DNA of 64,000 nucleotides from Anthoceros angustus (Eukaryota; Plantae; Anthocerotophyta): NCBI GenBank assembly GCA_010909165.1, contig VJWM01000019.1:620001-684000 (forward strand), read 5' to 3'. Positions 1-3,831 of this stretch are shown here, one piece after another; the stretch's first letter is position 1, and the number at the start of each line of letters is the position of its first letter. The notes under the pieces are model-generated. The model saw nothing but the letters and a program-made list of their open reading frames with translations, ran no database searches and was not told the origin of the DNA. A program made the position numbers and the translations under genes.

Positions 1-2513
1 CGGTGTACTCGATGTGCATCTCTGACTACGATTTCTCTCTTCTCGAGGCGGGACATGATCTTGGTGCTGCTGTGGCAGTCATTGCACATGCGCAAGTTCT
101 TGGTGACCACCAAAGTGGTGCCATCTGGGGTGTTGAGAAGGCCATATGCCAATGCCAATTTCTCAGCATGCCCGCACAGGGCATCCTCCTTCTCCTGCTC
201 AGACACTGCCTTCAGCACCAATTGTGTTTGTGGTACATGGCCTCCTTCCTCCTTCAACCTCGTACTCACGCTCCTGAGCTTCGGGGAGATGTCCGTCCTC
301 TCTTCCCCTACTGTGAACTCGTGCACCTCCTTCTCCACTTCGATGCATGCCTTTGCAGCCTTCTTCACAGCACCTGCTGACTTCCTCCAGCTTTCCACCC
401 TGTCCACGTCGTCCCACCTGCCTGCATCCGCGTATATGTTCCCCAGCAGGACGTATGAAGTTGAATTCTCAGGTTCCAGTTCCACGAGATGGTCGAAAGA
501 TCGTCTTCCCCGCTCTACATCACCGTGAGTCTTGCAAGCTGTGAGCAAGGCTGTCCAGCCCACGACGTCGTTGGTGAATGACGTTGTTCGCAACAAATGT
601 TCGGCCTCGTCCAGTTTGCCAGACCGGCCTAGAAGATCAACCATGCAACTGTGGTGGTAGTCGGTCGGTACGATCCCGTAGTCCTCCACCATCATCCTAA
701 AATACCGCTGGCCTTCCTGCACCAGGCCTGCATGGCTGCATGCCACAATGAGACATACAAATGTCATCTCATCAGGCTTAACTCCTTGCTGCAGCATATC
801 TTCAAAGCACCGGACCGCCATGTGACCCTCACCATGTTCAGCATATCCCTTCAGCATCGCTGTCCATGTCACCAAGTTTCTTGAGGGCAATCCGTCAAAG
901 ACTTTGCGGGCATCTTCTAGACTCCCACACTTCGAGTACATGCCAACCAAGCAGCTGCCAATGACTGGGTTAGCCTCAAGGCCTCTGTCCCGACACAGAG
1001 AATGAAGCTCCATCCCTTGCTGCAGCGCGCCCACACTGGCACATGCTTGCAAGAGACAAGAAACCGTAACATGATTAGCAGCAGGCAGGAAAGCCTCCTC
1101 CTTCTGCATACTCGCATACAAAGCCAGGGCTTGTTGCCCAAGCCCCTGCTGAGCATATCCTGCAATCATGGCATTCCATGTCACAACATCTCTTCTGGGC
1201 AAAGCATCAAACACTTCCCGAGCATCCTCCAAGCTGCCGCATTTCGCGTACATATTCACCAGGCTGTTACCAATGCCTGCATCACCTTCCAACCGTCTTT
1301 CCCGAATCTGCCAGTGAAGCTCTCTGCCCTGCTGCAGCGCTCTCTCCCCCACACTGGCACAGGCTTGAAGGAGACACACGAAAGTAACACGATTGGCTGA
1401 AGGCATGCCGTCCTCTTTCTGCATCCTCGCGTACAATACCAGAGCTTCTTCCCCAAGCCCCTGCTGACTATATCCTGCGATCATGGCAGTCCAAGTCACC
1501 ACGTCCTTCCTGGGCAAGCTGTCAAACACTTTCCGAGCACCATCCAAGCTGCCGCACTTAGCATACATATTCACCAAGCTGTTCCCAACGAAAACATCCG
1601 CCTTGACAGCACTCGCTTGAATGTCAGCATGCACCTCCTTGCCCGAAACCAGGTCCTCTGCAACGGCACAAGCCTGAAGGGCTGCCACGAAGATGTGATT
1701 ATCCGGCTCCACGCCGAACTGTCTCATCTGCCTGTAAAAGCTGATGGCCTGTGCAGGCTGTCCCTGCCGAGCATGCGCCAAAATGATGGAAGACCACATG
1801 TGGATGCTGGGCGTTGGCACCTGACCAAACACCTGCACTGCATCCTCCAATTTGCCAAGAGAGGCATACATACCAATGACATGATTCACCAAAAACGCGT
1901 TGGAACCCAACCCCCGTGTCGCAGCAAGAGAATGCACGCGCCTACCACATTCCAGGTCCTTCTCTTCTGCGCACCTCTTCAGCAAACGGTGAAAGAGAAT
2001 GCCGCTGATCCGACATCCCCGCTGCACCAGTTGCTCCAACGCTTCAACAGCCTCGCTGAGCTCTGCGTCCTCGCAGCGTCTGCTCAACATCTCGCCCACC
2101 CAATTCTCCTCCTGCCCATTTCCAGCCGCTGCAGCGGAAGCCCCCATTCGGACATCCCAGCTGGCCAGCTGCGAATCCACCCATACAGGCTTGTGGTAAT
2201 TGTCGAGCCATAGGGGCTCCTGGGAGGTCTTGTGTCTGAAGTCAGGATGCCGGGAGCCTCTCTTTCCCGCTCTGTAGTCCCACCAGTCCGACGGATTCGA
2301 GAAGAAATGTTGCCACAGAAGCTCCTGCCGCTCTCTCTGCGTCACTCCTTGTGTGGAAGAGATGCCGGCAACGGACGCTGGGACTGGGAATGCATCCAAA
2401 TGCCCCGTTACACCACCTGGGCCGCTGCGGAAAAGGCATCCTGGCTTGCCTGGCAACCTGCAGGAGAGGGCATCCGGGAAAAGGCTCACACCCATCGCCA
2501 GCTGCATTCCCAT
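1..2513 (-). CDS. PLS-class pentatricopeptide repeat protein with E and DYW (KP-type) deaminase domain; 3' end outside the window
   Basis: One minus-strand frame from ATG 2513 to the window edge; both ends fall in the same frame. PLS repeats (VFVGNSLVNMYAKCGSLDGARKVFDSLPRKDVVTWTAMIAGYSQQG), E domain (SYVLLGNIYADAGRWDDV), then KKAAKACIEVEKEVHEF...CGHAEKLALAYGLLNTPDGTTLVVTKNLRMCNDCHSSTKIMSRLEKREIVVRDAHRVHR. Missing from the ORF track because it has no stop codon in the window. Confidence 0.95.
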   Translation of the reverse strand, partial: MGMQLAMGVSLFPDALSCRLPGKPGCLFRSGPGGVTGHLDAFPVPASVAGISSTQGVTQRERQELLWQHFFSNPSDWWDYRAGKRGSRHPDFRHKTSQEPLWLDNYHKPVWVDSQLASWDVRMGASAAAAGNGQEENWVGEMLSRRCEDAELSEAVEALEQLVQRGCRISGILFHRLLKRCAEEKDLECGRRVHSLAATRGLGSNAFLVNHVIGMYASLGKLEDAVQVFGQVPTPSIHMWSSIILAHARQGQPAQAISFYRQMRQFGVEPDNHIFVAALQACAVAEDLVSGKEVHADIQASAVKADVFVGNSLVNMYAKCGSLDGARKVFDSLPRKDVVTWTAMIAGYSQQGLGEEALVLYARMQKEDGMPSANRVTFVCLLQACASVGERALQQGRELHWQIRERRLEGDAGIGNSLVNMYAKCGSLEDAREVFDALPRRDVVTWNAMIAGYAQQGLGQQALALYASMQKEEAFLPAANHVTVSCLLQACASVGALQQGMELHSLCRDRGLEANPVIGSCLVGMYSKCGSLEDARKVFDGLPSRNLVTWTAMLKGYAEHGEGHMAVRCFEDMLQQGVKPDEMTFVCLIVACSHAGLVQEGQRYFRMMVEDYGIVPTDYHHSCMVDLLGRSGKLDEAEHLLRTTSFTNDVVGWTALLTACKTHGDVERGRRSFDHLVELEPENSTSYVLLGNIYADAGRWDDVDRVESWRKSAGAVKKAAKACIEVEKEVHEFTVGEERTDISPKLRSVSTRLKEEGGHVPQTQLVLKAVSEQEKEDALCGHAEKLALAYGLLNTPDGTTLVVTKNLRMCNDCHSSTKIMSRLEKREIVVRDAHRVH

Positions 2514-2790
2514 CTCCTCCTCCGCGATTGTCACCTCCGACTCGGCTGGTCCATCAGCATTTTGCGCCCGAATGTGCGATTGAATCGTCTGTCAAAGCCA
2601 TCGCGTTCTCTCAGTCGTATAAAAACTCAATCAGCGGGAAAGCGTTCACAAAATTACGACCGAAGCTAGCTGTAGTCTAATATAGTTTCTGAGACGGTTC
2701 ACCTACAGTCTGCGAATCTCTACGATGTTTTCTAACCGATGAAACTAGCTTTCTTGACTGGAAGAATTAACAGGTAGCCAATACAACTTG

Positions 2791-3831
2791 TCAAACTTGG
2801 GCGAACTTCTCGACGTAGGAACCGGCAAGACCTGAAGTGCCGAGCACTCCAATCTGCAATTTAGAGCTCTGGCATCAGCGAAAGAGTGCTTTATGTAGGA
2901 AATCATTCACGAGCCAAAACTTTGATTCATTAGAAAATTACCTCTCCCCACTCAGCTTCCAAGCCGTTGCAGCGCTGCTTAACTTGAAGCATGAGGCTTC
3001 CAAGATCCAACTCCACCTTCTTCTTCAAGTAGCCCTCGGTTCCTTCATCAATGGAGTCCAAATAAGCGGAGTATCGGGCAAATGCAGACTTCAAAGCCTT
3101 CACGATTGGTTCTGGAATTTCTGCAACATCCTGTGTACAACAGCTTGATTGAGGACAAGAGGAGCACAGAAACTGCACTACACCACACTACCGCTTTCCA
3201 AATGCAGATTTCATACCTCACCACCGAATTTTCCCCCACTGAGCTCGTCCAGCTCCATCCTTAAGTGAATCAGTTTTGCTCCAAACTGCTCCACCGCTTG
3301 AGCCGACTGCCAAGAGGTGAGGAGGACTTCATCCCGATGATTAGCCAGGGTCGACTCCACGATCTTCTTCGTGCCATCGTCAATTTTCGCCCAGTTGTTC
3401 ACGTAGAGCGTTGCCAGGGCCTTCTTCACTTGCGGATCGGAGACCGGAGGAAGCTCTCGTGCGCCACCGCTCATGTGCCGCAAGTGAGGGATGCGAACAA
3501 ATCCAGAAATCTGGCCTGCATTTGCGTTCTCTGCACCAAAGCATCCATCCCGAATTTAAATGTCAGCATGACAACACGAGGTCTCCTACTTCACACATGT
3601 GGCTCGGCTCCATCATCCCGCCAAATCACCATCCTTCCACAAGACTCGGGCATCCCGAGTGACACAACGTTCAGCCAGTAGGAGTCGAGGTGGGAGGCAA
3701 TTACCTCCAAATTGAGAGGTAGGCGCAGAGGCAAAGGTCCTGAGAACCTGGGGACTGAAGCTGATGTCGTCTCCCCTGAACCTGCGGGCAGCGCAGGCCG
3801 CGAGACGCCGGGCCACAACCCTGCTTGCCAT
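2791..3831 (-). CDS. SDH5: Mitochondrial succinate dehydrogenase subunit 5 (plant-specific), multi-exon
   Basis: Arg-rich presequence MASRVVARRLAAC; exons AQAVEQFGAKLIHLRMELDELSG and YLKKKVELDLGSLMLQVKQRCNGLEAEWGE; last exon IGVLGTSGLAGSYVEKFAQV* matches the SDH5 C-terminus (LGTSGLSGSYVE). Confidence 0.9.

Follow-up and report, generated by a model that had tools for sequence, protein, structure and literature searches.

The 64,000-nt stretch of the Anthoceros angustus genome analysed here (contig VJWM01000019.1, positions 620,001 to 684,000; hereafter the window, to whose positions all coordinates refer) begins with a minus-strand gene for a pentatricopeptide repeat (PPR) RNA editing factor that carries, ahead of its repeat array, a homologue of the PDF motif of the OSB family (organellar proteins that bind single-stranded DNA). 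The original prediction, made from the letters of the sequence, had put a PDF-like motif N-terminal of, and in one frame with, the PPR repeats of a DYW-type editor, and the reading frame confirmed it. A single minus-strand frame is open without interruption from a stop at 2592-2594 to window base 3, with the first ATG at 2513, further in-frame ATGs at 2507 and 2495, and a length of 837 codons; the PDF motif, PPR array, E motif and DYW domain all lie in it, the motif being N-terminal of the array. The PDF peptide is encoded from 2324 down to 2157 and reads ELLWQHFFSNPSDWWDYRAGKRGSRHPDFRHKTSQEPLWLDNYHKPVWVDSQL followed by ASW, whereas the plus strand of the same interval translates differently. 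The window contains a single copy of the motif. The parts of the gene were as follows.

3..2513, minus strand: single-exon coding sequence of the PDF-PPR-E-DYW protein (open frame; Pfam matches; identical RNA contigs of the source organism at 339-1166, 1155-1481 and 1550-2853, with 0 differences and no joint).
2592..2594, minus strand: in-frame stop that precedes the first ATG and sets where the frame begins (reading frame).
2340..2513, minus strand: residues 1-58, disordered N-terminal stretch, presumed organelle transit peptide (predicted local distance difference test score, pLDDT, of 33-39 over residues 1-50; composition).
2148..2339, minus strand: residues 59-122, PDF domain of predicted helix, three short strands and helix, containing 2157-2324 (profile match, identity and predicted fold).
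2118..2147, minus strand: residues 123-132, start of a low-confidence linker in which the dip in pLDDT continues to about residue 140 (pLDDT 60-64 over residues 121-140).
528..2117, minus strand: residues ~133-662, PLS-type PPR helical array (PPR, PF01535, 2.5e-63, 10 stretches; PPR_2, PF13041, 2.9e-62; PPR_1, PF12854, 6.3e-34).
360..527, minus strand: residues 663-718, E motif (Pfam PF20431, E 6.6e-17, profile positions 1-56 of 63).
3..242, minus strand: residues 758-837, DYW deaminase domain with KP-type features (Pfam PF14432, E 9.2e-30, profile positions 1-80 of 93).

On the 837-codon frame Pfam recognised the ten PPR stretches, E_motif and DYW_deaminase, and nothing on the first 138 residues. 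The start of the window truncates the DYW domain, and about 13 codons and a stop lie beyond the edge, as judged from close relatives; as far as the window edge the gene looks intact. Residues 1-58 are abundant in G, S, P and A and scarce in acidic residues, and on this composition and the predicted disorder they are presumed to be an organelle transit peptide.

Pfam and NCBIfam hold no model for the PDF motif, and a word-index search with residues 50-130 returned nothing, which reflects the sensitivity limit of that search since an exhaustive phmmer search of 1.84 billion representative proteins with the 71-residue stretch of residues 55-125 did find relatives. The latter returned 649 proteins at E<=1e-3, of which 200 reached E<=1e-10, most of the matches being 250-560 residues long with two to five matches toward the C-terminus, which is the layout of OSB proteins. 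Proteins named as OSBs by their sources were among them, i.e. a mitochondrial-like OSB1 of Populus and the OSB3 proteins of Chenopodium quinoa and Euphorbia peplus, and the identity of the window PDF with the PDFs of proteins bearing the names OSB1 and OSB3 was 41-47%. BLASTP aligned 68 residues of it, 47% of them identical (E 1e-19), with the protein entered as 'organellar single-stranded DNA binding protein 3 [Euphorbia peplus]', and gave a second match to the other PDF of the same protein. A weak SSB/OB-fold match was located ahead of the PDFs, at residues ~70-167, in two of the named OSBs and in an OSB-sized protein of Sinapis alba (P0047, P0053, P0012). The residues that are invariant or nearly so in OSB PDFs are all kept in the window (W, WWD.R, K, PDF.HK, LW and P.WV), and the motif fits the definition of the PDF domain as some 50 residues around Pro-Asp-Phe with flanking W/WWD.R/K/HK/LW/P.WV.

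A hidden Markov model (HMM) built from 317 PDF segments of the 136 phmmer matches without PPR similarity scored the window protein at 85.5 bits (E 1.5e-19 at Z=1.8e9). The match to the OSB PDF motif that had been claimed was borne out by this score, which is significant and comes from the very kind of profile search that the original prediction had proposed. Judged from sequence, the stretch at 2148-2339 encodes a true homologue of the OSB PDF motif, a module of ~55 residues by which plant OSB proteins are defined. The competing explanations that the resemblance is due to chance, or that an assembly or gene-model artefact joined an OSB fragment to a PPR gene, carry a negligible probability and were ruled out by this E value, by the uninterrupted frame, by RNA contigs of three organisms that span the junction, and by the recurrence of the same architecture in independent annotations of Adiantum, Ceratopteris, Diphasiastrum, Sphagnum and Calypogeia.

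OSB proteins share with the window PDF the signature W..FF.NP..WWD.R..K....PDF.HK....LW.....P.WV and the predicted fold, and an N-terminal presequence is plausible in the window protein. Their layout is different, as OSB proteins carry one to five PDFs at the C-terminus whereas the window protein has one PDF, at residues 59-122 of more than 837, placed N-terminal to the PPR, E and DYW parts, and the rest of it is a PPR-E-DYW editor. Neither the central OB-fold/SSB-like domain nor the C-terminal PDF or PDFs that mark an OSB were found in it, Pfam gave no SSB match anywhere in the protein, and because it has no OB fold the window protein is not an OSB. A 2026 study of the OSB family, which reported up to five PDFs per OSB protein, required both the OB-fold and the PDF and would therefore have missed PDF-PPR proteins. 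The motifs themselves also differ in detail, since PPR-linked PDFs usually have a loop before P.WV that is 1-2 residues longer than in OSB PDFs, a more uniform consensus and other consensus shifts.

The fold of the 71-residue PDF was predicted with a 40-sequence alignment, and the domain alone was modelled as a helix, three short strands and a helix (pLDDT 91.3, predicted template modelling score 0.76). In a 330-residue model, residues 1-54 were disordered (pLDDT 33-39), the PDF was confident (86-95), residues 121-140 were softer (60-64), and confident PPR helices followed, with helix pairs from residue 133 on. Such a pattern, a disordered stretch and then a folded domain, is what would be expected for a presequence and a domain kept on the mature protein. 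An alignment of the N-termini of 20 PDF-PPR proteins from hornwort-like, liverwort, moss, lycophyte and fern sources placed 13 of its 18 invariant columns in the PDF, a concentration that points to strong purifying selection. These results bear on the alternative that the PDF has no role in the mature protein, being removed with the transit peptide or decaying as a remnant. The closeness of the motif to the N-terminus would suit this explanation, but in five plant lineages no other part of the N-terminal 330 residues is as conserved as the PDF, which is also confidently folded behind a disordered residue 1-54 stretch and shows no indels in two related species, and we regard the alternative as very unlikely.

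Comparison of the PDF model with the ESM Atlas matched it to a plant cluster in which 97% of the members carry the PF00436 SSB domain (TM score 0.87 over 71 residues, both sides being predicted) and to three plant PPR/DYW clusters (TM 0.82-0.87), and the same predicted fold is therefore present in both protein contexts. Among solved structures, Foldseek against the PDB with the PDF model returned nothing at E<=0.001, the highest Z that VIA-align reached over 48,161 chains was 3.7, and a PDB sequence search with the PDF gave a chance match alone (E 1.4); a search of the ESM Atlas by features gave no usable match. As no solved structure resembles the PDF, structures do not inform its mechanism. 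The domain is small and aromatic-rich, and neither Foldseek nor VIA-align gave it a solved-structure relative pointing to a nucleic-acid-binding fold, which leaves room for the proposal that it is a protein-protein module, used for oligomerisation or for docking to OSB, other nucleoid or editosome proteins and not for binding nucleic acid. The report of AtOSB2 as a tetramer (PMC6963530) is in line with this proposal; however, the only biochemistry reported for the PDF motif is binding of single-stranded DNA (ssDNA), and a purely protein-binding role appears unlikely. Outside plants the sole structural lead came from two clusters of hypothetical tailed-phage proteins (Uroviricota, 187-199 aa) in the ESM Atlas, with TM 0.63-0.66 over 60-63 residues, which is weak for so short a domain.

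The features of a PLS-class PPR-E-DYW protein are present in the window, namely a tandem PPR array and, behind the E motif, a DYW domain that contains HxE and CxxC. The DYW domain reads GHAEKLA, TKNLRMCNDCH and VGEERTDISP without xHP, and the equivalents of Lys88 and Met92 are present. The features listed for the DYW:KP type are HAE, Lys88, Met92 before CxxC and a missing xHP (PMC9478123, PMC11845758). This type also has a C-terminal triplet other than DYW (GRP, DRH and the like), a position that for the window protein lies beyond the window edge. The KP box was judged against natural relatives: in the window it reads KKAAKACIEV against KKPAKACIEV in close relatives, PG being absent and the P of KP replaced by A, and the closest relative (P0302) is also without the KP pair (KRSAKACIEV). 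The nearest full-length relatives, which are known only from run assemblies, are 50-62% identical, carry KKPAKACIEV or a similar box, and end in GDRH, GGRP or GDAH. On homology and three of four testable features, the window protein is classed as a KP-type (U-to-C-associated) PPR-E-DYW editing factor. With the DYW:KP proteins, which in hornworts, lycophytes and ferns are the candidates for U-to-C editing (Gerke 2020 and Gutmann 2020, cited in PMC9478123), it shares the PLS array, the E motif and a DYW domain with HAE, the Lys88 equivalent, Met and no xHP; the N-terminal PDF that it carries is not mentioned for them in the literature searched, and the name-giving KP pair reads KA in the window protein.

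PPR proteins made up 12 of the best 150 PDF matches, and 33 of the best 120 full-length homologues carry one to three PDFs, always N-terminal to the PPR array. The named sources of such proteins are the ferns Adiantum, Ceratopteris and Pteridium, the lycophyte Diphasiastrum, the mosses Sphagnum compactum, S. magellanicum and S. jensenii, and the liverwort Calypogeia fissa. Many of the Diphasiastrum and Sphagnum proteins are canonical DYW:PG factors with a PG box and the ending CSCGDYW or CSCRDYW, while the fern examples end after the E motif (E-class). A 1213-aa PPR protein of the leafy liverwort Calypogeia fissa (P0275) has its PDF at residues 67-132 but, according to Pfam, neither E nor DYW, so that PPR proteins lacking these editing domains can carry a PDF as well. 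The tie of the PDF to the DYW:KP class that the original prediction had suggested did not hold up, as the fusion is also found on these DYW:PG, E-class and PPR-only proteins, and from this range of carriers the fusion is old and not tied to U-to-C editing. Among the best 120 homologues, none of those from Cryptomeria and Ginkgo carried a PDF, and of twelve close KP-type relatives tabulated from the same set only one (P0224) did.

The PDF-PPR architecture is thus not unique to the window gene and already exists in public protein sets, where it has gone unremarked under the names 'hypothetical' or 'pentatricopeptide repeat-containing'. The public proteins (e.g. Adiantum KAI5076972.1, Ceratopteris KAH7415342.1, Diphasiastrum KAJ7570437.1, Sphagnum CAM6033764.1 and that of Calypogeia fissa) have the same order of presequence, one to three PDFs and PPR array; the window copy is KP-type, whereas many of them are DYW:PG, E-class or PPR-only, and its PDF is 50-63% identical to theirs. 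A tree of 87 PDF segments over 69 columns, 17 of them PPR-linked, was poorly resolved. Ten of the 17, including that of the window, grouped together (SH-aLRT 86), and the PPR-link label was clustered on the tree, with 6 changes against 15.8 in shuffles. A constraint that kept all 17 in a single clade was acceptable in the approximately unbiased test (p 0.571), and under it the tree scored higher by 3.9 log-likelihood units. A single ancient PDF-PPR fusion is possible on these sequences, the tree neither showing nor rejecting a single origin.

PDF matches were also recorded in proteins of other kinds. The dinoflagellate Effrenium voratum (Symbiodiniaceae) has proteins with nine PDF matches (P0002, E 2.6e-70; cluster members P0303-P0307), for which transfer, contamination or a wider distribution of the motif are all possible. 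A protein of 1160 aa from Kingdonia uniflora (P0001) has 13 PDF matches, against the maximum of five in the family study mentioned above. PDF motifs are combined with a kinesin motor in a 1526-aa protein of Coptis chinensis (P0060), which may be a gene-model fusion of neighbours, and with an 'interactor of constitutive active ROPs 2' protein with an SSB domain in a 1063-aa protein of Striga hermonthica (P0038), which may likewise be a gene-model fusion.

Transcription was followed in an RNA run of the source organism (X1) and in runs of two related organisms (X2 and X3). The X1 contigs derive from RNA, as GT..AG joints are present in neighbouring genes, and the one at 1550-2853 is free of joints across the PDF motif and the first part of the PPR array. 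The X2 contig at 1622-2512 and the X3 contig at 1483-2535 span the same region at ~94-95% identity; their sole indel is an in-frame 3-nt deletion in X3 at 2105-2109, about residue 136, in the linker just downstream of the PDF, and no indels fall inside the PDF itself in the two related species. A transcript starting downstream of 2324 or one from which the motif is spliced out, which the original prediction had named as outcomes that would tell against it, was not seen, the contigs of all three organisms covering the motif unspliced. The X1 contig spanning the 5' end goes on into SDH5, the gene upstream, and reaches even a gene of the plus strand; X2 and X3 have separate contigs for SDH5 and for the PPR gene.

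The upstream gene on the same strand encodes the plant mitochondrial succinate dehydrogenase subunit 5 (window 2790-3530, minus strand; Pfam SDH5_plant 1.5e-19 and 5.3e-10). Its exons lie at 3216-3530, at 2942-3129 and, for the last, from 2853, and its introns of 86-174 nt are confirmed by RNA contigs. The X1 contig that joins it to the PPR gene may represent read-through or overlapping untranslated regions (UTRs). Two short upstream open reading frames are present on the minus strand between the SDH5 stop and the ATG at 2513, at ~2553-2601 (MALTDDSIAHSGAKC) and ~2531-2560 (MLMDQPSRR); their presence in the mRNA would require a 5' UTR of that length, and the contigs of the relatives go no further than 2535 and 2512.

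Extra avidity for the transcript, coupling to nucleoids and action on ssDNA had each been put forward in the original prediction as possible functions. On its RNA a PPR array is oriented with the N-terminus to the 5' side, and the DYW domain works on the edited base at the footprint's 3' end. A PDF attached N-terminally through a flexible linker would be positioned just 5' of the recognised sequence, where it could grip single-stranded nucleic acid in a sequence-independent manner and give the protein more affinity for, or dwell time on, its transcript. By analogy with the OSB proteins, we tentatively prefer to see the PDF as such an anchor on a transcribed, intact-looking KP-type editor, because the AtOSB1 PDF motif has been reported in a review to be sufficient for ssDNA binding (PMC6963530) and OSB1 and OSB2 have been reported to prefer ssDNA over double-stranded DNA (dsDNA) or RNA (PMC4166229). 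The strand held could be RNA 5' of the footprint or ssDNA at the nucleoid; RNA is slightly favoured because the local concentration would be very high under tethering and because PPR-linked PDFs differ consistently from OSB PDFs.

The possibility ranked just below the RNA anchor, and nearly as likely though still doubtful in itself, is a nucleoid tether in which the PDF would bind ssDNA in transcription bubbles, R-loops or replication and recombination intermediates, so that the editor is kept on the nucleoid and editing is coupled to transcription. The same reports of ssDNA binding by the AtOSB1 PDF (PMC6963530) and of ssDNA preferred over RNA by OSB1 and OSB2 (PMC4166229) argue for it, as do the core residues, which are identical in OSB and PPR-linked PDFs. 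On the other side, the longer loop before P.WV and the shifted consensus suggest that specificity may have changed in PPR-linked PDFs, and for PDF-PPR proteins the tether is putative. Protein docking, loss at import and DNA editing are less likely. The last of these, in which the fusion would redirect the deaminase to ssDNA and so edit organellar DNA, has in its favour solely that OSB PDFs are reported to prefer ssDNA; the targeting of RNA is what the 500-residue PPR array and the E motif normally serve, the same PDF occurs on PPR proteins that have no deaminase, and we hold this outcome to be highly improbable.

Several points weigh against the RNA anchor that we prefer. Binding by the window PDF itself is drawn by analogy from the OSB proteins, and the preference of OSB1 and OSB2 for ssDNA over dsDNA or RNA (PMC4166229) favours the ssDNA tether. 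Intactness of the gene extends to the window edge, with the last ~13 codons beyond it. The start of the gene is predicted from the frame, and the X1 contig that reaches the 5' end merges transcripts and therefore does not define a single transcript or 5' end. Finally, most of the close KP-type relatives in the search are without a PDF, which by comparison of their sequences indicates that the PDF is not required for editing as such.

A functional analogy may be drawn with the MORF/RIP, ORRM and OZ factors of seed-plant editosomes, in that an extra module could help a PLS-PPR protein to hold its substrate. These factors are nevertheless unrelated to the PDF in sequence and fold, and they are separate polypeptides or other fusions.

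The original prediction had suggested that this architecture may be undescribed, and no describing paper was found in the literature searched: there the term 'PDF motif' was not used for PPR proteins and 'organellar single-stranded' never occurred together with DYW, the original OSB, Gutmann and Gerke papers being outside its scope. A 2026 kingdom-wide survey of domain fusions among editing factors makes no mention of OSB or PDF. The gene unites two modules that are each known, in a combination that is conserved and, in the literature searched, undescribed.

The usual description of a PPR-DYW editor comprises a presequence, a PPR array, E motifs and a DYW domain. This picture lacks the conserved and folded domain, of a nucleic-acid-binding type, that stands before the array in five lineages of seedless land plants (hornwort-like, liverwort, moss, lycophyte and fern). 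The domain is of direct relevance for engineering, as designer KP editors for U-to-C editing have been built without the PDF, and the window copy, being transcribed and unbroken within the window, lends itself well to testing. A broader scenario, which we put forward as improbable on present grounds, is that PDFs would physically tether a large part of the organellar PPR proteins of seedless land plants, C-to-U and U-to-C editors alike, to nucleoid ssDNA; editing would then be built into the transcribing or replicating chromosome and not act on free RNA, and the loss of the fusion in seed plants would parallel the rise of separate helpers such as the MORFs. More generally, the PDF could link editing to the nucleoid, and it could explain how seedless plants run hundreds to thousands of editing sites.

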